From Macrostomum lignano (Eukaryota): a stretch of 64,000 bases of DNA. The notes under the pieces are model-generated. The model made no database searches. It saw only the letters and a list, made by a program, of their open reading frames with translations, and had not been told where the DNA came from. The DNA lies in the NCBI GenBank assembly GCA_002269645.1, contig NIVC01000146.1, forward strand, positions 1 through 64,000, written 5' to 3'. Each line of letters starts with the position of its first letter. Position 1 is the stretch's first letter. Position numbers and translations under genes: made by a program. Below, piece after piece: positions 3,113 through 46,929 of the stretch.

Positions 3113-6100
3113 CTACGGTATCAGCTGCAATCCAAGCCTGCCTGATGGCTCCCTTGCCGCTCTGGCTGAGTTCAACTGTTGCTGCTGTTGCGGCTGCTGC
3201 TGCTGTTGAGGTTGTTGCCGCTGGTACTGCAGCTGACGCACCGGCTCCCTCATCTCTTCGTCCTCCAGACTCGCCAGGTACCTTAGTATGGCTTCGAAAT
3301 CTTGCGGCATCCTGAAATGATTTAGCGATGCAGATGTCCCGTATATTACTTGCAGTAGTCGTATCCTTTTCCAAAGAAGCGTTTCGGTCGCTTAAACTTG
3401 AGCTACCTGTTTCGAGAGGCTGCTGCACTGCCAACGTTTGAAGACCTTTTGCCCGCGTCTCGGCTGGTGCAGACGCTCATCAGGATGCACAGCAGCTCGA
3501 TGAACTCCATGACGCTGAGCAGCGAAATTCCTGCGGGGCAGGCGAGTATGCGCTTTGTGTCAGCTGGGATATGGGTTTGTGTCAGCTTCGGGATGCGTTT
3601 GTGTCAGCTGGGGGGATGCGTTTTGTGTCAGCTGGGATATGGCTTTGTGTCAGCTTCGGGATGCGTTTGTGTCAGCTGGGGTATGCGTTTGTGTCAGCTT
3701 CGGGATGCGTTTGTGTCAGCTGGGGGGATGCGTTTTGTGTCAGCTGGGATATGGCTTTGTGTCAGCTTCGGGATGCGTTTGTGTCAGCTGGGGTATGCGT
3801 TTGTGTCAGCTTCGGGATGCGTTTGTGTCAGCTGGGGTATGCGTTTGTGTCAGCTTCGGGATGCGTTTGTGTCAGCTGGGGTATGCGTTTGTGTCAGCTG
3901 GGGTATGCGTTTGTGTCAGCTTCGGGATGCGTTTGTGTCAGCTTCGGGATGCGTTTGTGTCAGCTGGAGGGATGGGTTGGTGTCAGCTGGAGGGATGGGT
4001 TGGTGTCAGCTGGAGGGATGGGTTGGTGTCAGCTGAGGATGGGTTGGTGTCAGCTGGGGTATGCGTTTGTGTCAGCTTCGGGATGGGTTGGTGTCAGCTG
4101 GGGATGGGTTGGTGTCAGCTTCGGGATGCGTTTGTGTCAGCTTCGGGATGCGTTTGTGTCAGCTGGAGGGATGGGTTGGTGTCAGCTGGAGGGATGGGTT
4201 GGTGTCAGCTGGAGGGATGGGTTGGTGTCAGCTGAGGATGGGTTGGTGTCAGCTGGGGTATGCGTTTGTGTCAGCTTCGGGATGGGTTGGTGTCAGCTGG
4301 GGATGGGTTGGTGTCAGTTGGGGATGGGTTGGTGTCAGCTGGGGATGGGTTGGTGTCAGCTGGGGATGGGTTGGTGTCAGCTGGGGATGGTTGGTGTCAG
4401 CTGGGGATGGGTTGGTGTCAGCTGGGGATGGGTTGGTGTCAGCTGGGGATGGGTTGGTGTCAGCTGGGGATGGGTTGGTGTCAGCTGGGGATGGGTTGGT
4501 GTCAGCTGGGTGGCACAGTGATGGCGCGTTCGGCCAGAGCTCATTCAGCTTCCTGCAGCTTCAAATAGTTTGAAAGCGCAGTTCACACAGAGTACGACGT
4601 TTCCACATGGTGACGTTCTGTGTGTTCGAGTGCGCAAAAATCACTTACTGATGGGCTGGTCATGCCAGAGGGGGGGCAAGAGTTTCGGGCTCTGTTGTTC
4701 ACTTGACAGCTGCGGTACGGTTGCCCCATCAACCAATAAGTATTGGGCAGGACTTCGCGATGGGAGAATTGGAATATGGGGACGACTGACTGCAGAGACT
4801 GGCAGGAACAGCCGCTAGCAAGCTGTCTTGCGACCCTCCTTTGCCGGAGAGCCCGCTTGTGCAGATAAATTGAAGCTCTGCTCCGAGACAGATACCGAAA
4901 TGCACAGCTTGGGTTTATTTTATATAGATGCTGGGCAATGCTGGTGGGTATTCCAGCCTTGCTATGCACAGTGGATCCACTTCGACAACTAATTTCGTAA
5001 TTCGCCTCCCTCAGAAAATGCACATGTAGTTTGGCCTCTCTAGACCCGGCACAGGCCTACCTGTGCAATTTGTCTTATCGCAGCCATCTGCGGCAGGCAG
5101 GCAGGAAGCGAGGCAGAGACAGGGGGAGAAATGCAAGACTGGGAATAGATTACCGGCCTGGCGCGCCGTTGGCTCGAAGCTTGACATTTCGCTTTGCTGC
5201 TGCACCGAGAAGGACGGTTGAAGGAGGCTCTCCGAGTCCCTTGGCATCAGCGGGATCCCGGGTGTGTGCGGGCTGCACTTTCTTACCATTTTTGCTCACT
5301 AGCAACGGGGATCTGACACCGCAAGTGCGAGTGCATTTATGCCCTAGGCTGTATTAAGTACAACCAGCTGGGCCTTGGGCTACATATTACTATTAGTAGA
5401 TCGTTAAATGGGGATAAAAAAATTCAGAGATCTTCAAAAACCTCAGCCTCACCCATCCACAGGCCGAAGATGCCGCCAACCTCGCTGAGTGCCTCCGGCC
5501 AGTCGTAGCTGTACTCCTCCATGTAGACGCCCGCGTGGGTCGAGGCAGGTTTGATCCAGATCTGGGCAACGTTTGCCTTCAACTTGGCTCTGGAGATGCA
5601 CCACGAGTCTACCAAGGGTGCGTCCGTGCCATTCTCCTTCCGGCAGTCCGGGTTGAACAGGTGCCGAATGATGGCCTCGGCCCGGCTGTTCCGCGACTTC
5701 AGCAGGTGCATAACCTGGTCCTCATTCTGCAGCTCGGCGATGTAAGACGGCATGAAGACGTAGTTCACAAAGTCAATCAGCTCGTCACTTCGCGGCCAGG
5801 GCACCTGCACTTTGGTGGCCTGCAGCTTCCAGCTGGTGCAAGGCTTGTATTCATCTTTCTGCTGCAGCAGTTCCGAGGTTTTCTGCTCAGCCAGTTTGAA
5901 TGAGTTGGTGTGGCAGGCGAGCCGCTGCATGAACTCCATGGAAGGGTGAATTCTGTGCTGCGGATCAGCGTAGAGGCACAACAAGCTGGTGTTGAACTTG
6001 AACGGCAGCAGATGAGTGTAGCAACCGCATTTGTCAAATATCATCTTCTGCTGGGCCTCCATCACTGCTTCCGGTTGAGTTAAACGATAGCTCCGTAGTC

Positions 6101-7118
6101 CAGTGACGTTCGGGCCGAAGTACCTCACATAGGAGATGGTCTCCGGCTCTTCTGCGTTGCACACATGCGATGGTGGCCTGTTCAACGTGTTCACCTGCTT
6201 TGTGTTGACCTCAATGGTGGTTGAGGCGCCGCTGGACACGTCAAAGGCAATATCTGATGTGGTGGGAAACTGGCTCTCATTGTGTATGAAGATTCTCAGG
6301 CCTTCAGCCTCCCATTTGTTGCCGGTAAGCACCTGATTTAAGGTCCGATTTCCGCGACCCAAGTACGTGCGCAGCGAATACGGATTGGTGATCTCGTCCT
6401 CTCTGGTCATGCTTCGGAGATAATTCACCGAGTCGTCCAGCCTGTTGCTGTCGAAGTTTGAGTCTGTGAACAGAATCAGCCTCAGCCCGCTGTCCTGATC
6501 GCTGTTGTCAATCGTGCGGTCGCCATCGAGGGGCTGGAACGTGTAGCAGTTCCAGTAACGGTGGTGCTGAACTAATTTAAAGTTGGAGGCATTGCAGTGC
6601 TTGTTCTTATACAGGCACATCAGCAGCGTGTGTCTGTCACTGAGCCCGAACTCTCGGGTGTCGTCCGATACCCAGAAAATGTCCGTGTACGTCTTGAGCA
6701 GTTCGCGCTGCCTTTCCTTGTATTCGACTCGGGTCTCGCTGTGTTTCCGGCTTCGCAATCCGAACAGCCAGTTATCAAAAAAATTCCACACCTGGTCCAG
6801 GTGGTGGAACAGCGCGGCTTTCTCTTCCTCGGCGTGAAGCAGCGCCTCGGACACGGGCTTCAGGTTGCAGATGGTCACGCCGGGGAACAGGGCCTGCGGG
6901 CCTTCGTCCCGGTAGATGCTGGTGATGGGCGACTCCAGGTAGTTGCTAACCGTGGCGTAGATGTGATAGACGCAGGCCCCGCTGGCTGCGAAGGTCAGCA
7001 CAAGCCAGAACGCCTTGCGCCACAGGTCGCCGCTCTGAAACATGTGGCTCAGTCCGTGCAGAGTGGACCGGTGCCCGTACTCAGTAAGCACGGTCGCCGC
7101 CGCCTTCACGTTCGACAT
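3113..7118 (-). CDS. DEG/ENaC/ASIC-family sodium channel subunit; join(7118..5453, 3530..3407, 3311..3113), ~662 aa
   Basis: ATG at 7118. Motifs STLHG (pre-TM1), hydrophobic TM1, FPGVTICN, WNCYTF, GLRIFIH, Cys-rich thumb, and SEVGGIFGLWMG|ISLLSVMEFIEL (TM2 with GxS filter joined across a phase-1 intron). A 95-nt intron at 3406-3312 gives an in-frame Gln-rich tail; this last exon is less certain. Confidence 0.9.
3548..4507. repeat. 21-23 bp minisatellite (gtgtcagctgggg...) in the DEG/ENaC intron
   Basis: Seen directly; the unit drifts from atgcgtttgtgtcagct to atgggttggtgtcagct along the array. Confidence 0.95.
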
Positions 7119-7124
7119 TGCTTT

Positions 7125-7127
7125 TGC

Positions 7128-7165
<38 letters not shown>
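7125..7165. repeat. (CAG/CTG)n tract just upstream of the DEG/ENaC ATG
   Basis: ~13 trinucleotide units with one variant; an in-frame TAG lies upstream, so the tract is probably UTR. Confidence 0.85.
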
Positions 7166-7166
<1 letters not shown>

Positions 7167-8613
7167 AGAAGTCTAGAAATTTTGCAGCTGCTTTAGTCTT
7201 GCTAAGACGGTCGATACTAATAGGCTTCCCCTGCGCCAAGGACTGGGAAAAGTGAAACGCAGTCTGTTGCTCCCCGGCTCTAAATTAGGGAAGAGCGCAA
7301 GAACGCTAAGCCCTTCCAAAGAGGATCCGCCGCCAGGTATTGGACCCCTCCTGATGGCCATTCAGTGAAGGACGGTCGGCTCCCTCTCGGGTGGTGCGTC
7401 ACCTCCCAACTGTACTAAAAAAGGTCAGTACAGCATTCTCTGCATTCTCTTTGGGGAAAAATTGCCCCAATATTATTCTCTTCGCGTAAACGACAAAGCG
7501 AAAAATTCAATGAAATAGACCATAACTGCGGCCCGCTAAGCCTCTCTATCCGGCCCTCGGGTCCTTTGAAACTTCACAACATCGATCCGGCCGGCTCAAG
7601 CCTTGTGTCTCTTCTCAGCTCTCTTAACTTCCCTCTCTCCTCTCTCCTCTTTTCTTCTCTCATCCCATTCTGATCCCAGCTGGGTTCTTTATCTGGCCTT
7701 TGAGGTAAACAAGTATTAAGGTTTTGTGCCTCTGTTTCAGTGCACTGTTTGGCCAATTTCATTGGATAACAGACACGCCGTATTTTCATCATTTTCGTTA
7801 CTCGCCTTGCAGAAAAGCCAGCTTGCCTCAATAGCAAAGAGTTTACGCGACGTGTCTGCTTCTGCACAACAGCTCTGTTGCTTTTTTAGCACAAAAGCCT
7901 GCTCGAATTTAGTCTCCACGCGCACAGTAGCCAGGCATTAACAATGGCCGCCTGTACAGCTTATTCATTATCCCCAGGCTGCTCGGGTCAGGCAAGACAG
8001 TCAAGATGCCCCGCACCCAGTCACCGCCCCTCCTCCAGCACTGGAACGGACAATAGCCCCGTCATGGACTACTCCACTTGGAGTCTGGATGGCGAAACCA
8101 CAGTTGTCCAATATTTAATCAGAATTTGAAAGTCGATTTTAATGCCATCCGATGCACATCACGAGAGTCAAAAATCGTTTATGCGGAAGATTATTACATG
8201 ATTATTAGCGCATTGCTTTCGATAGATTTTGTTGTGGTATAAGAAAGAACTGGGCTGGTTATTCCCTTGCCATATAAATGCTTTTTAGAACTTCTTGGCT
8301 CGGGTCGCGAGCTGCATAACAAGCTGTCTATTGTGTCGACCAGTCGATATCTGTTGGTTACTCCGCGAGTGCGAGCCCGCCATTCCAGCACTGCAGCTGT
8401 TGCAGCAATATCAACCGCAGTGACAATGTTGGTGAGTGCAAGTTTCTGTCTTTATATTGAATTCAGAGGAAGAAAAAACATGCAGCTACCCTAAAAAACC
8501 AATTCGCTGGATATCTCCGTTCTCGAGGTTGAGAGAAATATACGATTTATTGTCATAGGGCGCGTTACTTCCCCGATAGGCTTCGCCCTCGCCCATAAAC
8601 CAGTCCTCAGCCA

Positions 8614-8914
8614 TTTGCGGCCACAATCAATGAAGCCAGCTGGGCAATGGGGTCCGGCCATAGACTACAGAAACACTTCCCTTCCCCTGCCTTTGTTTGC
8701 GGCCACAATCAATGAAGCCAGCTGGGCAATGGGGTCCGGCCATAGACTACAGAAACACTTCCCTTCCCCTGCCTTTGTTTCCGGCCACAATCAATGAAGC
8801 CAGCTGGGCAATGGGGTCCGGCCATAGACTACAGAAACACTTCCCTTCCCCTGTCTTTGTTTCCGGCCACAATCAATGAAGCCAGCTGGGCAATGGGGTC
8901 CGGCCATAGACTAC
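8614..8914. repeat. 82-bp tandem repeat, ~3.7 copies
   Basis: Near-identical units at 82-nt spacing (ORF starts 8615 and 8697 mirror the period). Confidence 0.9.
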
Positions 8915-9653
8915 ATAAAACGTATTTATAAAACTCCAAATTAATGAATTTCTGTGGCGGAAGGCTGCAAGTACACATAGGGGCGGCGGCGTAGAAGAAG
9001 CAGCCTTCGCGCTCCCCAGCCCATCACGACTCGTCTGTGCGCCATTTTAGAACTAATTTTAATGTTAAATACTAAATGAAATTATTTTAACATGATGTCT
9101 AACATTCTGAAGATATCGAATTTAAAGAGAAAAAATCGAGAATGCTTTAATGAATGCGAACTTCCCTGGATACTGAAAGTAGGGTCTGTTGTACAGCCTC
9201 GCACGCAGCAACTCAGCGCTGCTTGTGCTCGCACTTTATCTGCATCAGCAAGTTTGATTTGCTATGCGCAGCTTCAATATCTAAAACTTATTGAACTCAA
9301 AGTCTAAAGGGATTGTTGCGCAATCGCTAAAGCCATAGACAAGTCTCGGAAGGGGGACATGGGCATATAATTTATATAGCATACGGTTTACTCAGCAGCC
9401 CAAAGCCCAATTCTCAAAGCCTAACTGCACTGGAACCGACAAGCCTCTCGCACTGGCAAGACTCACAAACCAGTGGGGCAATGCTCAACCTGCAGCTTTC
9501 ATCGGCCTGCGACAAAGCGAGGCGGGCAAGGCAGTTGTATTTTGCAATGGTAAAAATACTTGACTTTGCAGACAGCACAGAGCTAATAAAAAGAGATCTC
9601 CGAAATAAAATTATTACTATGAATGTTTCATACTTTTTCAAGATATAAATACT

Positions 9654-9769
9654 GGGGTCGTACTATAAAGCTGTCGTAGCGTAAGTTCGATCGTACGTCG
9701 GAACTTTTACACGGCGGAGATAGGAGCTAAGAACGATCTTATCTTACGATGGCATTATAGAACGGGCCC
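9654..9769. mobile_element. Small degenerate Harbinger-like MITE (116 bp)
   Basis: Imperfect TIRs ggggtcgtactataaagctgtcgta / tacgatggcattatagaacgggccc; shares cgtaagttcgatc and gatcttatctt with the 882-1407 element. No clean TSD. Confidence 0.55.
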
Positions 9770-9942
9770 AAGGTCCCTGCAACCATGGATTTAAGGACTG
9801 TCTGTAGAAACAGTCCTGAAGTCTATCATTAAGAGTACAGGCAAACTATAAGTGATTTCATCTTCATCTCGCTGAGAACAGGTAATCAAAATAGCTCCCC
9901 AAGTGCAGTCCTTGAACTGACCTTGAACCGTTGCTGGCATAA

Positions 9943-11376
9943 AACCCGCAGTTCACCGGGCACAAAAGCTTCACTACAGTCATACTGCTCGGAGTCGGTT
10001 TGCTGCTGCTGACCATTCTGTTTCTAAGAAGCACGCACAAACTTGCAGGCAATGACAAGTTCAGAATACCAGCAACCATGCCACATGCAGCAGAGCTTAA
10101 ACAAACTGCTAGCGAAGTCATACAGCAGCAGCTGCGCCGCGACCAGATCGATCTGGAGTCCATCGGGCACTTCGTGTACAGCGCCTACTTTGACACCAGA
10201 CCGACGCTCAACGGTCGCAAGTACGTCCGCGTGATCACTGTGCTCGATACGAAGGCCTACGAGAAGGAGCTCACCTGCCAGTTCATGCACCAGTCCGGTC
10301 ACCTCTCCTTCAGCACAGTCGCCAAGAGGTCTGCTATCGGCGCTGGCATGGGTCACAAGCAGCACTATTACAAAGAGTTCGTGCTGTCTTGCCCCGTCGC
10401 AGATGACCTCAGCTCTGCTACCTTCGTCTTCATTCAAACTGGCGACGCCTCTCTGAGATCGCAGGTGATGCGAGTGAGACACAACCCTCTGTCTCTGGGT
10501 CAGAGTCCAAACACCCTCGTCAGATCATCAACTGCGTGTCGGTGACCTTTGGCAAGCCGGATGAGTACAGACTGATCGAGTGGCTCGAGGCTCAGAGACT
10601 GCTCAAGATGGACAAAGTGCAGCTGCACTTTCATCACATGACGAACAAAAATTTTGAATCAGTAGCTCAAGCCTACAGTGCAGAAGGATTTGTGGATGTG
10701 AGAAAGCTCGGATGTCCGTTTTGTGAAGCCGGTCAGGAAGAGTCGCTGGGGCTGCTGCTGATGTCTCCCGCCATCAACCAGTGCTTCTATGAGGTAATAG
10801 ACACGTCATGGTGGACAGTTTTCAGATTCGTGGTGTCACTCGTCCTTCCTTATCGAATTGCAGAACCTCGGCCGCTACACGTACACGGCGGTGTTCGACC
10901 TGGACGAGATCATCGTGCCACAGCAGCACCCGGACTATCCCACTCTGCTGAGCGCGCTGGAGAAACGAGCGAACACGAGCTCGTTCGCCTTCAGGAACTG
11001 GTACCACTTCAGCGAGCTCGGAGAGGACTCCTCGGTGGACCCCAAGATGTACATGCTCCGGCATCCGTACAGCACGAAACAGGAGAGTCCGCTTGGCTAT
11101 TCTATCAAATCGATTCACAAATCCTGCTGTGTGGTGGCCTTGCACAACCATTTCAGCTGGGAGGACGTCCCCAAGCCGAACACCCAAAGCGGTCATCTTC
11201 CAGTGCCTATCGATCTGGGACTCAATGAGCACTACAAGAAGTGCCATTTTGACGAGAAAACTTGCAAGGAGATGACTGACGTGAAAGACAGAAAATACGG
11301 ATTGCGACTTCGTCAACTGCTCGGCAAGGTGCTCACGGAGTCATTTCGTAGCAAAGTGAAGCAGATTTTTGGGTGA
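9943..11376 (+). CDS. Glycosyltransferase family 92 (DUF23, GALT-1-like) copy 1; intron 10794-10863; frameshift ~10515; start codon not found
   Basis: Signal anchor FTTVILLGVGLLLLTILF; CVSVTF..LIEWLE; NQCFYE|NLG; VFDLDEIIVP (DxD); KSIH; HNHF. One C is missing in a C-run relative to copy 3. Confidence 0.8.
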
Positions 11377-12195
11377 CTTGAGTACCCGAAGGAGTTACTC
11401 TCTCTAGTTTTTTTGCAAACTTCATATACTGCTTGATGCTTGATGATAGTACGAAACATTACTAATAGTTCCCGACAGAACAACTTAATTATCTTTGGTT
11501 CTGTCAGCTGAATTCCACTATATTCTTATATGCACATTTTCATATAGTAAAGCCAGGAACCATTCAATACTAGGGACGGGAAACTACAATAGTTGTAGGC
11601 CGATCTATTAATAACTTAGTCCTCGGAAACCATTACTTGGATTTGTTTTTACCCCAGACAATAGGAGTAAGACCTATCTAAGTAATGCTTTTTGGTTTGA
11701 GGACAAAGTTATTAATGGATCGACCGCCAACGTCATTCGCTTTCCAACCCTAGTATTGATTAGTCTCTGTGCACAACGTTGTTTCCATAGGTGTAGTCAA
11801 CTAGTGAATACAATTCATACAGTTTGTTCGGTAATGCTTGACTTTTTCAATAATTTTGACGCATTTTCAAGCATTGATTACTGTAAGAAATTAGATCTAG
11901 AAATTACAGCGTTGAACTTTACATTTTCTACTGTCTCAAATATTTATACTGCGATGCTCACACTAGATGAGTGTGATTTTCAGCATTTAAAGTCAAAAAA
12001 ATCAGACAAAAAGCACTTCCGACGATAATAACCAATTGTTCTAACATGCGGCCTACTTTGATGTTTTACGGAATGACATCGCTAGAGAAAACTGAAATGC
12101 ACTGATTTGTTCGTTAACCAACAAATAGGGATGTGAAATGAGTATGCACGTATTCATTCGCTGTGAACAAACTGCTTAGAATCATCAAACTCAAT

Positions 12196-12383
12196 TTAAT
12201 AATAATAATTTACAGTATTACACCTGCCCTAGTGGGCAGATGTGCAACCGACAGCTCAGCCGCAGCTATTGCACGGCGCATCTGAAGGCTGCGTACGGCT
12301 GTTCAGTCCAAGGACTGGGGGGTCGCCACACACAGCCTCAATTACCCCAGCTAATGCTGGCACCCATTTTACAGCTGGGTGAA
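12196..12383 (-). mobile_element. SINE family A, 5'-truncated
   Basis: Reverse complement of the 24125-24380 element; (TTA)n-type tail. Confidence 0.8.
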
Positions 12384-12829
12384 CACAGATACTAGAATAG
12401 CTCGATGGGTCATTCAGCACATTTGCGTGCAAGCTACTTTCAGTTGAGTAGTAAGTTAAACTGAAGCATTTTAATGTATTTTTAAAGACGGCTCATTTAT
12501 TGGCTCTTTCCCACCAAGCTTAATTAAGGCCTCAAACTCCACACAGAACCTCTACCCCTGCCCCGCCACCCAATTTTTATTGCCTTCCTCGCTTGTTCCA
12601 GCCTAAATCTGCCATGTACATTTCAGTGGCTAATGTACATTATTGCTGAACCAAATAGCAAGCTGTTTGCGTCTGAAAGCTTCTAAATTTATTAGTCATC
12701 TCAGCTGCCTTTATTGTTATAAAATAGCTTATGTATTCTTCATTGCTACTGAACTAAAAATAGAAAGCTGTTTTGTCAAGTACGAGTATATATGCCTGAG
12801 TGGCCCATCTAGTTATTCTAGTATCTGTG
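12384..12829. mobile_element. MITE with ~34-bp TIRs (CACAGATACTAGAATA...), copy 1
   Basis: TIR pair at both ends; the whole element recurs inverted at 32390-32836. Confidence 0.85.
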
Positions 12830-13048
12830 CCTGTTCCGAACTGGGACCCAACCGTCTCAGTTTACGTTGAGCAGCAGTTGCAGCGGATACTGCCATTTTC
12901 CGCTTGGAGACACGCAATGATGACCGCTGAACTTTGCACCAGTGATGAAATCGCAACCGGGTGAATAAGGTCGCCAACGATGTCATCCGTGCTTGGGTGT
13001 TCGGAATTGTGCAGTTGAAAAACGGAGCCGGCTTCTCCTTTCGCATTG

Positions 13049-13148
13049 AGCCGTACGCAGCCTTCAGATGCGCCGCACAATAGCTGCGGCTGAGCTGTCG
13101 GTTGCACATCTGCCTATTAAGGCAGGTGTAATCATTTATTGTTATTAT
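13049..13148 (+). mobile_element. SINE family A 3' fragment
   Basis: agccgtacgcagccttcagatgcgccg...cacatctgcc plus an AT-rich tail. Confidence 0.8.
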
Positions 13149-14081
13149 GCATCTTTGAATTCCCTGTCTAGGCAGTAAGCCAGTAAGGTGGGTCATACAG
13201 AGTGCAGTACTCAAGTACACGAGTTCTTGCTGTCGTGCGCACGGGCGCGAGAGCTCACAGCTCACGATCTCACTGAGTCTGGGGCGTCAGGTGGTGCAGG
13301 CTGCCTTCAGCAAGGTGTCAGGACGGCCGCAGGCAAGAGGCAGAGGATGCAATACAAGCATACAGGTAACCTGGACCTGGACCAGACCTTCAACTGCCTC
13401 TGGCAACCGAATGAAAGAAGACAGAACAAAGCACTTACTTCGTTGGCAACGGATGAGTTGGCGTAAGTCCTTAAAACTCGCGGCCTGCCGTCTCAACCGA
13501 TGTATATTTGAGATAATTCCGTAATGTGGTATGTCTGGAACCGAACTACACGGACTATTAAGTACGTTGGGCGTTCGCAGTAAGAGACCGTGTTTACGGC
13601 TGGCAGCTCCAACTGTACAGCTAGGTAGTGAAACAAAATCTCAAGCCCGAGCGCGCGAGAGGGGGGCAAGCGACGCTGCGCTCAAATAAATTAGCCACAG
13701 TACGCAAGGGGAAAGGCTGGCTCGGAGCCCCATTAGCCAATCACAGCGCAGAGTTACAAAAATGTACTGCAAGAGATGGCCTGGCTGCAGCCAATCATCG
13801 CACAACAAGCAAGGGGATAATTAACAGAGGGTTAAACGATAAAATAGAAAACTAGGACTTAAGCCAACTGGCTGAGACACACATTGCATACATTGAGGTG
13901 TGTCACACAGGGTGATTCACGCAGACATCAAAGTGGGGACGAGACGCATGGGGATGACTCAGGGAGGGATGCACTTGCACTGCAACGGTACCAACACAAC
14001 GTGGAACAAGAGCAAATGCGCTCTATAAATCACTTGAAATTGCTGAATTCCATACTGCTGGCTTAGGACGCTGCATCAGCC

Positions 14082-15492
14082 TTAACTTGCGCCAAATATT
14101 TGCTTTACTTTGCCGCGAAAAGCTGCCGTAAGCTCCTTGCCCAGCAGCTGACGGAGTCTGAAGCCGTCCTTATTATGCTTGACATCCGTCATCTCCTTGC
14201 AAGTTTCCTTATCTAAGTGACAGCGCTTGTAGTGCTCATTGACGCCGATTTTGACTTCTGCGTTGTAGCAGGATCCTTTCGTGTTTGGCTTGGGGACGTC
14301 CTCCCAGCTGAAATGGTTGTGCAAGGCCACCACACAGCAGGATTTGTGAATCGATTTGATAGAATAGCCAAGCGGGCTCTCCTGTTTCGTGCTGTACGGA
14401 TGCCGGAGCATGTACATCTTGGGGTCCACCGAGGAGTCCTCTCCGAGCTCGCTGAAGTGGTACCAGTTCCTGAAGGCGAACGAGCTCGTGTTCGCTCGTT
14501 TCTCCAGCGCGCTCAGCAGAGTGGGATAGTCCGGGTGCTGCTGTGGCACGATGATCTCGTCCAGGTCGAACACCGCCGTGTACGTGTAGCGGCCGAGGTT
14601 CTGCAATTCGATAAGGAAGGACGAGTGACACCACGAATCTGAAAACTGTCCACCATGACGTGTCTATTACCTCATAGAAGCACTGGTTGATGGCGGGAGA
14701 CATCAGCAGCAGCCCCAGCGACTCTTCCTGACCGGCTTCACAAAACGGACATCCGAGCTTTCTCACATCCACAAATCCTTCTGCACTGTAGGCTTGAGCT
14801 ACTGATTCAAAATTTTTGTTCGTCATGTGATGAAAGTGCAGCTGCACTTTGTCCATCTTGAGCAGTCTCTGAGCCTCGAGCCACTCGATCAGTCTGTACT
14901 CATCCGGCTTGCCAAAGGTCACCGACACGCAGTTGATGATCTGACGAGGGTTGTTTGGACTCTGACCCAGAGACAGAGGGTTGTGTCTCACTCGCATCAC
15001 CTGCGATCTCAGAGAGGCGTCGCCAGTTTGAATGAAGACGAAGGTAGCAGAGCTGAGGTCATCTGCGACGGGGCAAGACAGCACGAACTCTTTGTAATAG
15101 TGCTGCTTGTGACCCATGCCAGCGCCGATAGCAGACCTCTTGGCGACTGTGCTGAAGGAGAGGTGACCGGACTGGTGCATGAACTGGCAGGTGAGCTCCT
15201 TCTCGTAGGCCTTCGTATCGAGCACAGTGATCACGCGGACGTACTTGCGACCGTTGAGCGTCGGTCTGGTGTCGAAGTAGGCGCTGTACACGAAGTGCCC
15301 GATGGACTCCAGATCGCCTTGGTCCTGCAACAACTGCTTGGCAATTTTCAGAGCCGTAGCCCGAAGAGATGCAAAAGCACCGTCGTTGTCGGTCTGACAC
15401 GACATCTGCAGCACGATGCCCAGCAGAAACAGTCCGGCCAGTGCGATTGTGCCAGCCGCGAATGTAACATAACTCAGCTTGGTGCGCTTCAT
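14082..15492 (-). CDS. Glycosyltransferase family 92 copy 2; join(15492..14671, 14600..14082), 446 aa
   Basis: ATG at 15492, N-terminal signal anchor, 70-nt GT-AG intron, same motifs as copy 1, uninterrupted frame after splicing. Confidence 0.9.
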
Positions 15493-16089
15493 ACAAGTTG
15501 CTTTTAGGCTTCGGAAGAGTCAAGTATTTAAGTTTTAACTATCCTAGCAGCTGCTGTCAGAGAAGTTTTGCAGACGATTTTCTGAGAGAATGAAGAGCTG
15601 CTAACTCCTAGTTTGGCGTGCGTCTGTGTTTTTCACATGATGCAAGTCGCATGGAAATATGTTTCTCATTCATTTTCGGCAATTGTTGCAAAACTGGCAC
15701 AAGCTGAGTTACGGGTCTGGGCTGAGCACCCTGGGGTGAGAAACAGACGGAGGCTATGGTTAACAAAATCGTACATAGAGAGTACTGCTTTGCATGCAGT
15801 GGCATCGTTGCAAAAAAACTTTGCTTTTTTCTCTTGCCGAGCTCGAAATTTACAAACTCCTGTACAAGGAAAGGTGGGTGTAAAATTGTTTCATCTGTGT
15901 AAAATTTCTTTTCTATTTTAAAATTATCTCTTCACAAGATACGATTTCAAAGTTTATTTATACGAAGTTATACGGATATTTATATTTATATTTATATTTA
16001 TATATTTATACGGATATGGAGAATAATATTATGGAGAAGTAATGTTGAGTCTGGAACAGGCCATTATCGAGCCTTGGTTACTTGGAGGT

Positions 16090-16320
16090 TTGGGGTTCGA
16101 TTCTCGACCCACTCAACAATTTCTGTTCTTGAGCAAGAAACTTGCTCAATGGGTGCCAGCATTAGCTGGGGTAATTGAGGGTGTGTGTGGCGACCTCCCA
16201 GCCCCTTGGACTGAACAGCCGTACGCAACCTTCAGATGCGCCGCGCAATAGCTGCGGCTGAGCTGTCGGTGCCACATCTGCCTATTAGGGCAGATGTAAT
16301 CAATTCTTTTTAATATTAAT
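16090..16320 (+). mobile_element. SINE family A copy with internal deletion
   Basis: B-box gggttcgattc, body matches 24125-24380, and ~35 nt of the core are replaced by an inverted repeat. Confidence 0.8.
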
Positions 16321-16559
16321 AGTTCAAAATGCTTATAGCTCTAACTAAAATACAGTAAGAGCGAGTACAATGGCAGAATAGTTGACAAAATTCCACATTG
16401 CCTAAAAGTTTCAAGCATTCCAATTTTTGAATTTTTGGTCTTGTGAACCCCCCGGAGCATGTGTTGTGCCCGGGTGCGCTTGCACCGATGAGCAATCTCT
16501 GGCTCTCGGTCAAGTGTGCCCGGCACTGCACTCCCACCCCTCCCGGCCGCGTGCCTGTG

Positions 16560-16810
16560 CCAACCCCCCCATTCTGTCTGCGTCAACCCCCCCCCCATTC
16601 TGTCTGCGTCAACCCCCCCATTCTGTCTGCGTCAACCCCCCCATTCTGTCTGCGTCAACCCCCCCCCATTCTGTCTGCGTCAACCCCCCATTCTGTCTGC
16701 GTCAACCCCCCCCATTCTGTCTGCGTCAACCCCCCCCCCATTCTGTCTGCGTCAACCCCCCATTCTGTCTGCGTCAACCCCCCCATTCTGTCTGAGTCAA
16801 CCCCCCCCAG
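16560..16810. repeat. ~22-26 bp minisatellite with variable C-run (caacccccccattctgtctgcgt)
   Basis: Seen directly. Confidence 0.9.
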
Positions 16811-16937
16811 TTGCACCCACCCCACTGTCTGTTAGGTCAGCCGGTTTTGGCTGGCTGCGGCTCCAGTGCGCCCCTCGCTCGCCCTGCGATTGGCTTCAAT
16901 TTCATACTAGTCAGGAGAATTTTCATACGACTGCTAC

Positions 16938-17660
16938 AACAAATCTGACACAGTTTTGCGGTAGTGACACACACAGATCTGACACAGTTTCGCAGTAGTG
17001 ACACACAGATCTGACACAGTTTTGCGGTAGTGACACACAGATCTGACACAGTTTGAAGTAGTGACACAGATCTGACACAGTTTTGCAGTAGTGACACACA
17101 CAGATCTGACACAGTTTTGCAGTAGTGACACACAGATCTGACACAGTTTTGCAGTAGTGACACACACAGATCTGACACAGTTTTGCGGTAGTGACACACA
17201 CAGATCTGACACAGTTTTGCAGTAGTGACACACAGATCTGACACAGTTTTGCGGTAGTGACACACAGATCTGACACAGTTTGAAGTAGTGACACAGATCT
17301 GACACAGTTTTGCAGTAGTGACACACACAGATCTGACACAGTTTTGCAGTAGTGACACACAGATCTGACACAGTTTTGCGGTAGTGACACACACAGATCT
17401 GACACAGTTTCGCAGTAGTGACACACAGATCTGACACAGTTTTGCGGTAGTGACACACAGATCTGACACAGTTTGAAGTAGTGACACAGATCTGACACAG
17501 TTTTGCAGTAGTGACACACACAGATCTGACACAGTTTTGCGGTAGTGACACACACAGATCTGACACAGTTTTGCGGTAGTGACACACACAGATCTGACAC
17601 AGTTTTGCGGTAGTGACACACACAGATCTGACACAGTTTTGCGGTAGTGACACAGATCTG
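16938..17660. repeat. ~30-34 bp minisatellite (cagatctgacacagttttgcagtagtgacaca)
   Basis: Seen directly; a variant block recurs 420 nt apart (16981 and 17401). Confidence 0.95.
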
Positions 17661-18592
17661 GCAGTGCAGGAAGATATTTTACAGTAATTGGCACAAATTG
17701 TTACATAAGTTCTACATCAACTGGAGCGGATATGAAACATGAGAAGCAGCTGCCTGTCGCGCTTACAGAAATTTCACAATACCGAGTTATATTTGCTTTT
17801 GTTGGCAGCCTGTACTGACAATAGGCAGCGTGGCGCAGGCAAGGCAACTTAATGCGATTCGAGCAGAGGAGAACAGCGTGAATATAGACTACATGAAGTT
17901 TTAAACAGACAGCCACGGTGCTTTCCAAATTCCCTCTTTTTGCACCGTCTAAAATACCTTTTAGCTTAACTTCCTTTTCTGCATGTGGAAAAGCACACAC
18001 AGTGCATTGTTCTCCGCAAATATATGACTGCTTCTGCGACCCATGCAGCATACTTTTGGTTTTGGCGATTTAAAACGAAAAAATTAGAAAAAACTGAATA
18101 AATTACTTCATGCTAAATGGTATAACTTTGATAGATCGTTTCTTGGAAAATTTTAGGAGGCAGGAAGAAAATAAATTACGCAGATTGAAGATTTTCGTTT
18201 TTTCAATACAAAAATTTTTATTGCTTTCGATAGGAGGCAGACTTAATGCTCATATTTTGATATGATTTGCCTGTCTTATAGCTCTAGTGATATTCATAAA
18301 GCTTCTCGTTCAGAAAACTAGGATTCTATGTGAGTTTTATATTCTGCGTACATGTCCTGTGCCTAGAAATTTTCTTTATGACTATCAATAGAGCTTATGA
18401 GAAAGGCAAAACTTATTAAAATATGAACACTGGATCTGCCTCCGATCGAAAAGCAAAAAAATTTGTGCTGAAAAAAATGAAAACTTCCGATCTCCGTAAT
18501 GTTATCTTTGGAAAAACCTGCCTACTAAACTATTTCAAGAAACGTAGTTTGCCATACTTCTACTTGAGTAGTCCTTGGCCTAAAGATTAGAC

Positions 18593-18700
18593 AGTCAGGG
18601 CCGCTGCACACCGTGTGCGAGTGTGTGTGAGTGCGTGCCTGTGTACAGCATTGGCGCGCTTGTGTGCTCAGGGGTCAGCGGGATGGGCAGAATTGCCTCC
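18593..18700 (+). mobile_element. SINE family B internal fragment
   Basis: gccgctgcacacc..gtgtgagtgcgtgcctg..gctcaggggtcagcgggatgggcag resembles the body of 56422-56777. Confidence 0.55.
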
Positions 18701-18799
18701 GAGTTGTGGGCTGATGCATTTAATCATTAAAATTCTTAAGTTTTCAATAATGTTAACAATGCCACACCGAGCCGATGCTGTTTGTCAACTGAAAAAGCA

Positions 18800-19226
18800 G
18801 CTACAGCTACTCTGCGCTGGCCTTCCCGGTCCCTAGACACGAATCCCATCGAGAATGCCTGGGACTTCGTTAAACGCAGCATTCGAAAAGAGAATCCACC
18901 ACAGATATTGTGGAGCTGCGTCATGCCATTAAAAACGCTTGGCAGCAGCTTCTCCAGGACTTTCTGCGCCGCCTCATCCTGGGGATGCCCCGCAGAGTCG
19001 CCGCACACAAGGGATCCCACACGCGTTATTAAGCATCGCGATTCTAACTGCATATTGCATATAGTAATTTTTTGTGCGACTGATTTTTATTATTGATTCA
19101 ATCAACTTTCCCTTACTTCTTAGTTGCGTAACTTAAGGCGTGAATTTTGAGTGACAAGTTGTCGGAATAAGTGAGAAAATTTTCATCTCACTTGGAGGGT
19201 GGAACTTTTGACTATCGCTGAGTATA
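18800..19226 (+). mobile_element. Tc1/mariner transposon 3' remnant (frameshifted transposase C-terminus plus right end)
   Basis: WPSRSLDTNPIENAWD matches the Tc1 WPxxSPDLNPIE motif; after a frameshift, ELRHAIKNAWQQL...GMPRRV..KGSHTRY* (TAA 19030-19032); putative end ...actatcgctgag followed by TA. Confidence 0.8.
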
Positions 19227-20002
19227 GTTACACACAGATACTTCTAGAGCGCCAGCGTGAGGAATCTGCGCCACCGTAAGTGTCGTTGTTTAGGGTTCAG
19301 TGCCATTAGGATATCGTCACCATGGCCTGCGCGTTAGTGCGACAGTGGGTTGGCAGGCAAGCAGGACTGTGTGCTGAGTCTCCCGTGGTCCGTCTCGGAA
19401 CATAGTAGTTAGTGCCGAGTAGCGACGTCCATTAGATGGTCAGATTGAGCACCAGCTGCAATGTTCTCTAAAGACCTGAATCCTGCTACGACAGCAGCGA
19501 GGTTAATTACCGAGTCAGAAAAAAGCTGTCACGGATGCCATCAGAAAAAATACTGCTTTCAGGAGCATTTATGTTGTGACCGTAGGATACACCGGTTGTG
19601 TCAATAGGGAACTCAATGCATGCATATTACGAGCTATTTGCAGTTGGCTAATCATCGTAGCAAGGCAACGCTTTATTTGAAACCGAAGGGATGCTGGCCA
19701 GAGGGTAGCTTATACATGTAGAAGCAATAATACAGCAAGTGGACATTACCGACGCGGGTTTTAAAACATAGAATTCAATAGAACGCTTGAGCTTGAACAC
19801 ACAATAACAATTTATTAGCATTATTAAGTTTTCAACAATACGAGCGTATCAACAAGCTTACTCAGCAGAAAAGGTTACACTTAAACAGATTTAAACTCGT
19901 CAAAATTACTTTAGAAGTAACCTAACCAAAAATGAGCGAATAGCAATTCCTTCAAGGTCGAATGCGATCCCAATAAATTACCGTCAGCAATTCGCGGCAA
20001 AA

Positions 20003-21362
20003 CTATCCAAGAAGCTGTTTTGTCTTACTTTGAAAAGCCGCAGTAAGCTGCTCGCCCATCAGCTGAAGAAGCCTCGAGCCGTCCTTCCGCAGCGTTGCAT
20101 TCGTCATCTCCTTGCAAGTTTTCTCGTCAAAATGGCACTTCTTGTAGTGCTCATTGAGTCCCAGATCGATAGGCACTGGGAGATGACCGCTTTGGGTGTT
20201 CGGCTTGGGGACGTCCTCCCAGCTGAAATGGTTGTGCAAGGCCACCACACAGCAGGATTTGTGAATCGATTTGATAGAATAGCCAAGCGGGCTCTCCTGT
20301 TTCGTGCTGTACGGATGCCGGAGCATGTACATCTTGGGGTCCACCGAGGAGTCCTCTCCGAGCTCGCTGAAGTGGTACCAGTTCCTGAAGGCGAACGAGC
20401 TCGTGTTCGCTCGTTTCTCCAGCGCGCTCAGCAGAGTGGGATAGTCCGGGTGCTGCTGTGGCACGATGATCTCGTCCAGGTCGAACACCGCCGTGTACGT
20501 GTAGCGGCCGAGGTTCTGCAATTCGATAAGGAAGGACGAGTGACACCACGAATCTGAAAACTGTCCACCATGACGTGTCTATTACCTCATAGAAGCACTG
20601 GTTGATGGCGGGAGACATCAGCAGCAGCCCCAGCGACTCTTCCTGACCGGCTTCACAAAACGGACATCCGAGCTTTCTCACATACACAAATCCTTCTGCA
20701 CTGTAGGCTTGAGCTACTGATTCAAAGTTTTTGTTCGTCATGTGATGAAAGTGCAGCTGCACTTTGTCCATCTTGAGCAGTCTCTGAGCCTCGAGCCACT
20801 CGATCAGTCTGTACTCATCCGGCTTGCCAAAGGTCACCGACACGCAGTTGATGATCTGACGAGGGGTGTTTGGACTCTGACCCAGAGACAGAGGGTTGTG
20901 TCTCACTCGCATCACCTGCGATCTCAGAGAGGCGTCGCCAGTTTGAATGAAGACGAAGGTAGCAGAGCTGAGGTCATCTGCGACGGGGCAAGACAGCACG
21001 AACTCCTTGTAATAGTGCTGCTTGTGACCCATGCCAGCGCCGATAGCAGACCTCTTGGCGACTGTGCTGAAGGAGAGGTGACCGGACTGGTGCATGAACT
21101 GGCAGATGAGCTCCTTCTCGTAGGCCTTCGTATCGAGCACAGTGATCACGCGGACGTACTTGCGACCGTTGAGCGTCGGTCTGGTGTCGAAATAGGCGCT
21201 GTACACGAACTGCCCGATGGACTCCAAATCGACCGGGTCCTCGAAAAAGTTTTTGTTGATTGTCGCCTTGTCTTTAATGTCACTCAAAGACCAGGTACAG
21301 AGCAGCAGTAGCAGCAGTGCAAACCCGGCGGTCGCTATGACTCGTCGTGGTGGCTTTCCCAT
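20003..21362 (-). CDS. Glycosyltransferase family 92 copy 3; join(21362..20586, 20515..20003), 429 aa
   Basis: ATG at 21362, signal anchor GFALLLLLLCTW, the same 70-nt intron, intact frame. Confidence 0.9.
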
Positions 21363-21523
21363 GCCGCGGAGCCAACACTGAGAAGGAAAAACGATTGTTT
21401 TACTTAGATTTACAGGTAAGAGCCGTGTCAGAATTATTCTGATTTGCTGCTCATTACTTTTTCTGGTCCCTTGAGAAAAGCCATTAGATCGAAAATAATT
21501 TAACCAGCTAGCCTTAAATAGTA

Positions 21524-21997
21524 CTCTCCTCTCCTCTCCTCTCCTCGCCTCTCCTCGCCTCTCCTCGCCTCTCCTCTCCTCTCCTCTCCTCTCCTCTCCT
21601 CTCCTCGCCTCTCCTCTCCTCTCCTCTCCTCTCCTCTCCTCTCCTCTCCTCTCCTCTCCTCTCCTCTCCTCTCCTCTCCTCTCCTCTCCTCGCCTCGCCT
21701 CTCCTCTCCTCTCCTCTCCTCTCCTCTCCTCTCCTCTCCTCTCCTCTCCTCTCCTCTCCTCTCCTCTCCTCTCCTCTCCTCTCCTCTCCTCTCCTCTCCT
21801 CTCCTCTCCTCTCCTCTCCTCTCCTCTCCTCTCCTCTCCTCTCCTCTCCTCTCCTCTCCTCTCCTCTCCTCTCCTATCCTCTCCTATCCTCTCCTATCCT
21901 CTCCTCTCCTCTCCTCTCCTCTCCTCTCCTCTCCTCTCCTCTCCTCTCCTCTCCTATCCTCTCCTCTCCTCTCCTCTCCTCTCCTCTCCTCTCCTCT
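21524..21997. repeat. (CTCCT)n pentanucleotide microsatellite, ~95 units
   Basis: Seen directly, with cgcct and atcct variants. Confidence 0.97.
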
Positions 21998-22240: not shown

Positions 22241-22625
22241 ACTAGCAATCTAGCGCCCCCTTCGGGGTGGCCAATAAGCAAGGGACGAATCCTTTAAAAT
22301 GAAAAAAAAAATCTTAGGGAGGGGGGCTAGGAATCGAATTCTCATTTTAATTCTGGGCTAATGTACCAATAAAACATGCTTGTGCAGAATTTTATAACAG
22401 ACATTGAAATTCAACCATACTTGCCTTCTTTCAGAGCTACTTCTACCAGTACGCTCCAGTACGCTACCAGTACCCTTGTGAGCCTTGACATGTCAGCAAT
22501 TCCCCCCACAAGCCTTAACACATCAACTCCCCCCCTCGACATCTCAGCGATGCCCCCATAAGCCTTGAAATCTTAAAAAATCTGTCTACTTTCTAACCCT
22601 AACCCTAACCCTAACCCTAACCCTA
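22241..22625 (-). mobile_element. Helitron-like 3' end, left arm of a large inverted repeat
   Basis: On the minus strand, a GC hairpin followed by ...attgCTAG|T; near-identical reverse complement of 23393-23778. Confidence 0.6.
22593..22625. repeat. Interstitial telomeric repeat, (TAACCC)5
   Basis: Five perfect units at 22594-22623. Confidence 0.95.
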
Positions 22626-22667: not shown

Positions 22668-23111
<444 letters not shown>

Positions 23112-23112
23112 A

Positions 23113-23778
23113 GCTGAGATGTCAAGGCTCACGGGGGAATAAATGAGATGTCAAGGCTAATGTCAGAAGCTACATGTAGTTTATTGGAAAAAAGTTATTA
23201 TATTATTTGTTGGCTCCTCACGGGAGGGATCGCTGATAGAAAAAGCGTAATGTAAAAAATAAAAGAAGCTTCATGTCGAAGTTAAGAGATTCATTTGGGA
23301 ATCCCTACGATGTCGAGGCTTGCAGGGAATCGCTATAATGCTGTAGTAGTGCTATAATGACTCTTAGAGAGAATTACTGAAATTTCAATGCTTTAGGGTT
23401 AGGGTTAGGGTTAGGGTTAGAAAGTTAGACAGATTTTTTAAGATTTCAAGGCTTATGGGGGCATCGCTGAGGTGTCGAGGGGGGGAGTTGATGTGTTAAG
23501 GCTTGTTGGGGGGGGGGAATTGCTGACATGTCAAGGCTTACAAGGGTACTGGTAGCGTACTGGAGCGAACTGGTAGAAGTAGCTCTGAAAGAAGGCAAGT
23601 ATGGTTGAATTTCAATGTCTGTTATAAAATTCTGCACAAGCATGTTTTATTGGTACATAAGCCCAGAATTAAAATGAGAATTCGATTCCTAGCCCCCCTC
23701 CCTAAGATTTTTTTTTTCATTTTAAAGGATTCGTCCCTTGCTTATTGGCCACCCCGAAGGGGGGCCTAGATTGCTAGT
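23113..23778 (+). mobile_element. Helitron-like element 3' portion (right arm), including (TTAGGG)4 at 23393-23420
   Basis: Hairpin ggccaccccgaaggggggcc at 23747-23766, 11 nt before CTAG|T (23774-23778); body homologous to 47502-48330. Confidence 0.65.
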
Positions 23779-28225: not shown

Positions 28226-28500
28226 CCTCTCCTCTCATCTCTCATCTCGCCCGCAGCCACGATCTGGATTCTTTACCCTGGCCCTTGAGGTAAAGTTTGC
28301 CGAACCCGGAACCAAAACGGCAAGACGGAATCTGTTATCTAACTGGTCTTATAGCTCAGGAGAATACGAGGCATCGAGAGAGGGGCTTGTCGGAGAAGGG
28401 ACGTTCAGGGACATTACAAGTTAGACATCTGGACTGGCAGCATGGCTGAGCCAATGCTAGCTGCAAATTTAAGCTAATCAAATGATCTCTTTTTGCTCAC

Positions 28501-28768
28501 TAATAATAATAATGATAATAATAATTGATTACAACTGCCCTAGTGGGCAGATGTGCAACCGACAGCTCAGCCGCAGCTATTGCGCGGCGCATCTGAGGGC
28601 TGCGTACGGCTGTTCAGTCCAAGGTCTGGGGGTCGCCACACACGCCCTCAGTTACCCCAGCTAATGCTGGCACCCATTTTACAGCTGGGTGAACTGAAGC
28701 AATGCAGAGTTAAGTGTCTTGCTGCTCAAGGATACAAATTGTTCCGTGCGGGTTGAGAATCCTGACTG
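28501..28768 (-). mobile_element. SINE family A copy
   Basis: Reverse complement of 24125-24380 with a (TTA)n tail. Confidence 0.85.
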
Positions 28769-43472: not shown

Positions 43473-43567
43473 TGCGCTGTGCTGACTGACCGATTTAACT
43501 AAGCTGCAAGATGCAAATAATGCTGGTGTGAGCCCGGTTCGGGGCTTGATACTGGAAATCACATGCG

Positions 43568-46070: not shown

Positions 46071-46929
46071 GCCACAAGTCATATGCTAGGTATTTAGCCT
46101 GGAAATTCAAGTTAGGTACAGGTACTCAGGTAATTTCAGTCAATTTAACCAAATCGAGCTATTAAGTTAGGATTTTGTTTTAACGCTAACGCTTTTGCTA
46201 TGGTTTAAGACCAAGATGGCCACAGCTGGAGTGGGGGTCACGTGGGGGTCATGGAAAATGACAGCTGGTCTACTATTGGATAGCTTGGGCTTAAGTGTTG
46301 TCAAGCCGTTGGTATCTAGAAATAAAAAGGAATGTGGAGAATGGGTAGCAACTGATACAATTGATAAGTTTTTCATAGTTGATTTCCATTGCAATTGAGA
46401 TCACATATTCAGTTGTTAGAGTTGAATAGTTGAACACAAAAGGTGGGCGGGGTTGCTGTCAATTCAAGCTTGAATGAGCAAGGAGTTAATTTATGGTCAA
46501 ACTGTCCCCAAACCCCTCCCTTCCTTATGTGCATTGATTGTGACTAGTGGTGGTGGTGCCTCACAGATTTTTACTCACAAGCCAACCTTAGAGTAATTAA
46601 CTATACAATATAATGAAATAGAAAGTACTAAAGATTATCTTTAGAATCTTTATTTACTTCAATCTGAGTGTCAATCAGTGAGTCACCATGAAAAAAGAGA
46701 GAAAGAGAAAGCCAGTTCTGCATACAGTAAGCAGTATTGTTCCCATAGTGAATCAGTGAGTCAGTCAGCCGGTGACCATAAAACCAATGAAGCAATTGTA
46801 ATTTAGAATAAATTTAAAGGTATGAGCAAGTTCTGTGTTACATTAGGAACAATTGTTAGGCTTATAAAATCTTTGTTTACTTTAGACTTCGACATGTGAC
46901 AGGAGTCATAAACTAGCCACATGCATCAC

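Follow-up and report, generated by a model that had tools for sequence, protein, structure and literature searches.

The 64,000-nt window analysed here, positions 1-64000 of contig NIVC01000146.1 in the Macrostomum lignano assembly GCA_002269645.1 (Mlig_3_7), carries three genes for GT92 glycosyltransferases, which we call c1, c2 and c3 (Table 1); window and contig coordinates coincide, and locus L002, reached through one of the three proteins, equals window 32134-10003 at 100%. These genes are, very probably, old paralogues that share a 1.03-kb core which has been overwritten repeatedly by ectopic recombination, mostly by gene conversion, with crossing-over between c2 and c3 in addition. A tblastn search finds only these three copies of the core within the window, and the high-identity matches of the three window proteins are M. 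lignano sequences only. A search of the literature did not turn up any previous account of this cluster or of gene conversion in M. lignano.

Results

A near-identical core with abrupt edges

When the three genes are aligned, every 50-nt window from c1 position 10159 to approximately 11183 is 98-100% identical. The repeat search resolves this similarity into separate stretches: c1 10513-11183 is 100% complementary to c2 14281-14951, and 10127-10516 matches 14949-15338 at 97%; c1 10514-11276 matches c3 20103-20865 at 99%; and c2 14281-14580 matches c3 20196-20495 at 100%, as a direct repeat with a spacing of 5,915 bp. Throughout the 1,035-bp core the three copies vary at 11 positions, given here in c1 coordinates: 10153, 10170, 10188, 10191, 10274, 10374, 10513 (an indel), 10652, 10695, 11088 and 11178. 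Counted in pairs over 1,030 columns, c1 and c2 differ 3 times, c1 and c3 10 times, and c2 and c3 8 times. The 238 other columns that can be aligned hold, by contrast, 69-91 pairwise differences (core versus rest, Fisher P = 1e-43 to 1e-69). Identity outside the core is 66-78% in the tails and only 12-50%, that is, unalignable, further upstream and downstream.

The transition from one regime to the other is abrupt. At the 3' edges (11178-11184 and 11276-11277) a few bases suffice for identity to go from 100% to roughly 70%, and at the 5' edge the core passes directly into sequence that cannot be aligned. Silent sites show the same division, with a synonymous divergence (dS) of 0.019-0.029 in the core versus 0.9 to saturation in the tails, and the 70-nt intron inside the core has no differences among the three copies.

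The tract that c1 shares with c3 extends beyond the core by tail segment A (Table 1), in which these two genes differ by one synonymous mismatch (11199), while c2 differs at 37 of the 93 sites. After 11277 the affinity changes, and c1 is closer to c2 (38 differences) than to c3 (51). The core of c2 is itself uneven: its 5' half has 2 differences from c1 and 8 from c3, and its 3' half is identical to c3. The longest stretch over which c1 equals c2, 10192-11087, is interrupted only by the 1-nt indel at 10513.

Much of this had been noticed in a first-pass annotation made by eye, which counted about ten differences among the cores, an identical 70-nt intron and clearly diverged tails, described c1 as a mosaic that follows c3 for a further ~95 nt before becoming closer to c2, and attributed the pattern to interlocus gene conversion on account of its sharp edges. 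The alignments bear out each of these observations, and identity along the sliding window falls at once, with no gradual decay. The attribution to gene conversion is now backed, besides the sharp edges, by the silent sites and by the comparison with other copies of the locus reported below.

The gene-conversion run test that had been proposed as a check gave a divided answer. In a permutation test of the Sawyer type applied to the three window copies, the c1-c3 tail tract is significant (P = 5e-5) and is the only tract that is; the core is not significant. Since all three copies are homogenised, few polymorphic sites are left in the core, and this permutation, in the style of Sawyer and GENECONV, is under-powered there. 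For the core we therefore rely on the comparison with other contigs.

Comparison with other copies of the locus

Because about 85% of the M. lignano genome is present in three copies, the GT92 locus is found on further contigs as well. These three paralogous copies, which we call subgenome copies, account for ~85% of the assembly and have diverged by ~2.2% in single-nucleotide polymorphisms overall and by 1.1% in coding sequence (PMC10733133). In the same assembly the further copies of the locus are L001 (the end of contig 147), L003 (the start of contig 148), and L004 and L006 (both on contig 2621); L001, L003 and L004 were reached through the cluster members of the c1-like protein. With 98.7% identity to each other, L001 and L003 probably represent a single copy that was assembled twice. 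We compiled a table of variable sites and a set of per-segment distance matrices for nine sequences, comprising c1, c2 and c3 together with six copies on contigs 147, 148 and 2621, namely the c1 counterparts and the copies of the second gene on L001, L003 and L004.

In the interval 10701-11177, 1 difference separates the c1 gene of the window from c2 and from c3, whereas its own counterparts are 6 differences away and the copies of the second gene 10-11. The order is reversed in the tail, where c1 has 0-3 differences from its own counterparts and 38-51 from its paralogues. The copies of the second gene on L001, L003 and L004 have private variants at 10212, 10411, 10415, 10420, 10751, 11093 and 11096. 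Paralogues on one contig are thus closer to each other in the core than to their own counterparts, and the reverse holds in the tail, which is concerted evolution. At four sites (10975, 11045, 11064 and 11109) the three window paralogues all agree on one state, and the six copies elsewhere all agree on the other. Similarly, one state at site 10929 is common to the two genes of contig 2621 only. The core of c2, which is c1-like in the window, has c3-type variants on contig 2621 at 10170, 10274, 10374 and 10652. At least four recombination events within the 1-kb core are required by these nine sequences (minimum number of recombination events, Rm = 4).

Contig 2621 offers a natural control: in the region ~5300-11720 it differs from the window at only 12 positions in 6,421 bp. 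Eight of the 12 fall inside the 1,035-bp core of c1 (binomial P = 1.2e-4); at four of those eight the state is that of the window's own c2 and c3, and at two it is that of the second gene of contig 2621. This is the pattern expected if the core was recently converted by a paralogue close by on the same chromosome. Conversely, some exchange is older: the edge at 11276 is common to all c1 counterparts, and the c1/c3 tail tract is therefore older than the split of the subgenome copies.

The subgenome copies are also mosaic on a larger scale. In a comparison of 5300-15979 with L003 and L004, all copies are identical over ~5521-8800, and the window agrees with contig 2621 up to ~11.7 kb; beyond that point contig 2621 agrees with contigs 147 and 148, and both are 3-5% away from the window. 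The pattern points to exchange among the subgenome copies, by recombination or conversion, or else to the assembly having switched haplotypes.

A chimeric gene on another subgenome copy

On L001 and L003 the second gene of the locus joins the tail of c2, and the DNA downstream of it, to the N-terminus of c3 and the DNA upstream of that. L001 7458-11348 aligns to window 11480-15326, and L001 10139-11673 aligns to window 20032-21566; what is missing is 5,915 bp, exactly one period of the c2/c3 direct repeat. A matching chimeric protein, P0001, is present in the annotation of the separate ML2 assembly. Contig 2621 retains c2's own head and the spacer between c2 and c3. From the arrangement of these sequences it would appear that the direct repeats c2 and c3 also undergo unequal crossing-over; cores so much alike do not reveal where the exchange took place.

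Protein family and the position of the edges

The products of c1, c2 and c3 match the Pfam family GT92 (PF01697) at 81-84 bits, where the gathering cut-off is 23. All three contain the DxD-type motif FDLDE and a C-terminal NEHYK.CH, both of which are found in the distant relatives P0015, P0018 and P0047 as well; a sequence search of the PDB found no solved relative. The three proteins are putatively active, galactosyltransferase-like proteins of the Golgi.

The first-pass annotation had regarded the N-termini as unrelated. At the DNA level they are indeed unalignable, and BLASTP gives no significant pairwise match among c1, c2 and c3; the word unrelated, however, goes too far. In each protein a short basic tail is followed by a hydrophobic anchor and then a stem, the residual motif I..QL..DQ.DLESIG is common to all three, and the N-terminus of c1 matches that of the distant paralogue P0006 at E = 2e-4. 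The N-termini are diverged homologues of one anchor type.

In the numbering of P0002, the core starts at residue 100 (DLESIG) and ends at residue 421. Similarity to hundreds of distant GT92 proteins begins at residues 103-108, so that the 5' edge of the core coincides with the junction between the stem and the folded domain. The 3' edge behaves differently. Both the family-wide homology and the Pfam match run on for ~25-30 residues beyond residue 421, which places this edge inside the GT92 domain, directly ahead of a family-wide variable loop that is followed by the conserved motif N.HYK.CHF..KC.EM. The earlier picture of old paralogues that keep one homogenised catalytic module is thus only an approximation: the core is kept alike, but it stops some 30 residues short of the end of the domain.

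A proposed mechanism for the pattern

We propose that the three genes are long-standing tandem paralogues, encoding type II membrane glycosyltransferases of family GT92, and that the overwritten segment begins where the stem ends (DLESIG) and finishes just ahead of the variable loop near the C-terminus. In the tails, c1 and c2 appear to form the closer pair and c3 the older branch. Ectopic homologous recombination would copy patches of core between the paralogues, ranging from single sites up to at least ~900 bp, and most of these events would be non-crossover gene conversions. In the case of c1 this mode of exchange is indicated because c1 has the opposite orientation to c2 and c3 and every copy of the locus has a collinear spacer. 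On another subgenome copy, unequal crossing-over between c2 and c3 would have removed 5.9 kb and left the chimera with the head of c3 and the tail of c2.

Since tracts would form and resolve only in homologous DNA, they should end where homology ends. The places where they stop would accordingly be the fast-evolving anchor and stem on one side and, on the other, the variable loop (for c2) or the non-conserved C-terminal extension (for c1 and c3). Identity within the core and divergence beyond it may then strengthen each other, so that the edges sustain themselves. Loss of homology, rather than selection, is in our judgement what sets the edges of the tracts.

Alternative explanations

Several observations weigh against the history of repeated conversion that we favour, and most of them concern the assembly. 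All contigs come from a single assembly, for which Canu was run on one PacBio data set and the result was polished by Pilon, with Illumina reads mapped by Bowtie2 and RNA sequencing (RNA-seq) reads mapped by STAR (PMC5730564); about 93% of read pairs are multi-mapping in the M. lignano genome (PMC10733133), and single-site states in a 1-kb repeat could be affected. The proteins and contigs of the two assemblies are not in full accord, for P0001 (ML2) and L001 (Mlig_3_7) conflict at the core sites 10717 and 10744, which amounts to single-site noise. The assembler could have collapsed two repeats of 99% identity and so produced the deletion in L001 and L003. On the polarity of the four window-specific sites the outgroups disagree: the related transcript-like contig L007 has the other state at three of the four, and P0018 has Thr at 10975, as in the window. 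Lastly, L006 yielded no core copy, and the counterpart of c3 on contig 2621 was not reached through the neighbouring 89-aa gene, the fetched loci omitting 42,255-67,264 (~25 kb) of NIVC01002621.1.

It could be argued from these facts that the true cores are more diverged than they seem, having been made alike by the consensus or by Pilon, and that the two-gene form of L001 and L003 is a collapsed repeat; the 1-nt deletion of c1, which lies in a short homopolymer context, is typical of an uncorrected long-read error. Cross-talk among reads should, however, pull each site to the majority state, which is that of the six other copies, yet all three window paralogues keep the minority state at four sites. 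Moreover, the window and contig 2621 are near-identical over 6.4 kb and still have cores that differ, each matching its own neighbours; P0003 (ML2) equals the c3 gene of the window exactly in exons 1 and 3; and the most divergent pair of cores differs by 2.2%, as against 35-40% in the tails, so that such an artefact would cover the last 1% at most. We consider an artefact of this kind improbable. A one-off event, in which the core was recently copied and pasted just once, or in which whole genes were recently duplicated and then had their ends replaced, is slightly less probable again. From the window alone, three near-identical cores with common edges could need only one or two events, but the tracts have different edges and are of different ages: the c1/c3 tail tract is old (it is in all c1 counterparts) and the four window-specific sites and the site of contig 2621 are young. 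Nor can a single bifurcating history accommodate all nine core copies: incompatible sites are present (Rm = 4), and c2 is c1-like on one copy of the locus and c3-like on another.

Repeated exchange might also have proceeded chiefly by crossover, that is, by unequal crossing-over or inversion. The chimera of L001 and L003 is just what unequal crossing-over, or an intrachromatid deletion, between c2 and c3 is expected to produce. But c1 is inverted, and a crossover involving it would flip the 3.1-kb spacer and swap the tails, whereas all copies are collinear and the tails keep their own flanks; the patches, furthermore, are short, as in the 135-bp cluster or the single-site patch at 10929. We therefore think it very improbable that crossover-type exchange is the main homogeniser. 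As for purifying selection acting alone to keep the catalytic region identical in old duplicates, the core does span most of the conserved GT92 domain. Yet dS is only 0.02-0.03 there and saturated in the tail, and the tail, which retains the family-wide motif N.HYK.CHF..KC.EM, has diverged at its silent sites all the same. Since the core is near-identical at its silent sites and the 70-nt intron is identical, selection on the protein cannot account for the identity, and we assign this explanation a negligible probability.

Gene models and surrounding features

The coordinates of the genes and of the features discussed above are collected in Table 1.

Table 1. Positions of the GT92 genes, their shared core and associated features (window coordinates unless a locus is named).
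Feature	Position	Strand	Details
Core, c1 copy	10149..11183	+	reaches 11276 against c3 only; repeat search, three-way alignment
Core, c2 copy	14281..15316	-	variable-site table, distance matrices
Core, c3 copy	20196..21231	-	reaches 20103 against c1; repeat search, alignment
Tail segment A of c1 (QSGHLPVPIDLGLNEHYKKCHFDEKTCKEMT)	11184..11276	+	93 nt; alignment, distance matrices
Window-specific sites (c1)	10975, 11045, 11064, 11109	+	counterparts 14489-14355 (c2), 20404-20270 (c3)
Chimeric GT92 gene (c3 head, c2 tail)	L001 10114-11560; L003 15363-16810		5.9-kb deletion relative to window
Gene c1 (GT92)	9481..11376	+	translations; P0010 exon 1 junction; Pfam PF01697 E = 4e-23
Gene c2 (GT92)	14082..15492	-	ATG 15492; exons 15492-14671, 14600-14082; intron 14670-14601; Pfam E = 1.7e-23
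Gene c3 (GT92)	20003..21362	-	ATG 21362; exons 21362-20586, 20515-20003; intron 20585-20516; Pfam E = 1.4e-22
70-nt intron	c1 10794-10863; c2 14670-14601; c3 20585-20516	c1 +; c2 -; c3 -	identical in all three
Second GT...AG-flanked block	10465-10523	+	59 nt in c1, 60 nt in c2, c3 and all other copies; encodes VMRVRHNPLSLGQSPN(N/T)PRQ

The c1 gene has three exons. Lacking an ATG at 9943, it takes its start codon from an upstream exon that this codon closes (ATG 9547-9549) and that is spliced to 9952; a further in-frame ATG lies upstream at 9481. The intron that follows runs from 9550 (donor) to 9951 (acceptor AG 9950-9951), exon 2 occupies 9952-10793, and, after the 70-nt intron, exon 3 extends over 10864-11376 with the stop included. 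For c1 the NCBI product is a truncated one of 232 aa (PAA89575.1, our P0008), whose N-terminus is MDKVQLHF. c2, an intact two-exon gene, is without annotation in the NCBI contig record, where no gene is called (L002). The NCBI model of c3 (PAA89576.1, our P0007) adds an upstream exon out to 22134. c1 and c2 are convergent, with a spacer of 3.1 kb, and c2 and c3 form a direct repeat with a period of 5,915 bp.

The 70-nt stretch is a real intron, because L007, which derives from a related gene of 72% nucleotide identity, leaves out exactly 20585-20518 when aligned to c3. The second block flanked by GT...AG, 10465-10523, looks like an intron, a reading that we rejected. The block is translated in the NCBI proteins (P0002, P0007, P0009, P0010) and keeps the reading frame in c2, in c3 and in all copies on the further contigs; the relatives P0005, P0006 and P0015 conserve its peptide; and the alignment of L007 continues across it. 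It is coding sequence and not an intron. Inside this block c1 lacks one base, at 10513 (AAACA-CCC), and is thereby frameshifted, whereas c2, c3, L001, L003 and L004 are intact; the frameshift fits the fact that NCBI annotates only the truncated product P0008. The missing base reflects either a very recent mutation that makes c1 a pseudogene or a long-read indel that was left uncorrected.

The neighbourhood of the genes is rich in repeats. Between c2 and c3, on the + strand, 18782-19096 is an open reading frame containing NPIENAWDFVKRSIRKENPPQ, which looks to us like the C-terminal part of a Tc1/mariner-type transposase and is presumably a transposon remnant. Copies of a dispersed 100-150-nt repeat, 86-95% alike and oriented either way, lie at 12217-12368, 13049-13159, 16148-16327 and ~28500-28720, that is, on both sides of c2 and again downstream; the repeat may be a small non-autonomous element. 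Dense tandem arrays occupy 8614-8919 (an 82-nt unit, x3.7), 16561-16807 (a C-rich 23-nt unit, x10), 16939-17654 (a 34-nt unit, x22, the array measuring ~1.8 kb on contig 2621), 21524-21997 (CTCTC x95) and 22668-23111 (CTAT x111). The CTCTC array is directly upstream of the ATG of c3, and the CTAT array lies between the inverted repeats 22241-22588 and 23426-23778. Farther away, the open reading frames 36668-39402 and 40185-43562 (+) resemble a retrotransposon gag and reverse transcriptase, and they adjoin a - strand gene whose 1,285-aa product is annotated as having SNF2-related and Helicase_C domains. The G+C content falls to 30-36% over 46000-52000, against 42-55% in the rest of the window.

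Discussion

Gene conversion with tracts that include introns, and fusion genes of the Lepore type, belong to a textbook mechanism, of which this cluster is a new and well-controlled example. The locus gives a clean, internally controlled view of concerted evolution, in which flanks that are near-identical between two copies isolate the conversion events. A bolder interpretation, which we put forward only as a speculation and think rather unlikely, is that the cluster is an unusually active conversion hotspot, with several events since the split of the subgenomes (<= ~2% divergence) and with the core of c2 taken from c1 or from c3 depending upon the copy; selection may favour joining one shared catalytic core to anchors, stems and C-terminal loops of three different kinds, which would direct one activity to different Golgi locations or acceptors. 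If this were true, the three copies of the locus would provide a direct measure of the rate of ectopic conversion relative to subgenome divergence in a recent polyploid.

There are practical consequences as well. Short-read mapping, RNA-seq quantification, RNA interference or genome editing directed at the core cannot separate c1, c2 and c3, whose only paralogue-specific segments are the N-terminus and the tail. The public annotation omits c2 and shortens c1, and the number of genes, three or two, varies by subgenome copy. GT92 enzymes shape the surface and N-glycans of invertebrates and are linked to pathogen resistance in nematodes, and diversity in this family could matter biologically. Among the enzymes of the family, GALT-1 of C. 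elegans adds beta-1,4-galactose to core fucose, and GALS1 of Arabidopsis is a beta-1,4-galactan synthase. At the level of sequence, the M. lignano proteins resemble them in the Pfam match, in FDLDE, in the motif N.HYK.CHF, and in the order of type II anchor, stem and luminal domain.

Comparison with known systems

With respect to the chimera of L001 and L003, the appropriate comparison is with Lepore-type fusions, products of unequal crossing-over that include the delta-beta globin fusion and the hybrids of the red and green opsin genes. Here too a gene has the head of one paralogue (c3) and the tail of another (c2), and the intervening 5.9 kb is lost. Unlike those fusions, however, it is known from assemblies of one inbred line only.

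Conversion restricted to one domain is familiar from paired receptors and clustered families, of which SIGLEC11/SIGLEC16 and the protocadherin ectodomains are examples. As in those cases, one functional part is kept near-identical while the other parts remain distinct; the M. lignano proteins, however, are enzymes rather than receptors, and the 3' edge of their tract cuts a conserved domain. The palindromes of the primate Y chromosome exhibit arm-to-arm conversion in inverted repeats, and c1 and c2 likewise form an inverted repeat, with arms of 1.04 kb, a spacer of 3.1 kb and 3 differences between the arms. These arms are three orders of magnitude shorter than those of the Y chromosome, they comprise only the middles of genes, and a third copy, in direct orientation, takes part in the exchange.

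The classic case of interlocus gene conversion with sharp, intron-including tracts in tandem duplicates is that of the human fetal globin genes HBG1 and HBG2. The GT92 cluster shares its principal features: the duplicates are old, near-identity includes the intron and the silent sites, the edges are abrupt, and paralogues on the same chromosome are the closest to one another. It differs in that there are three genes, one of them inverted, in that both ends of the protein lie outside the tract, and in that the copies compared are the subgenome copies of a neopolyploid rather than alleles in a population.

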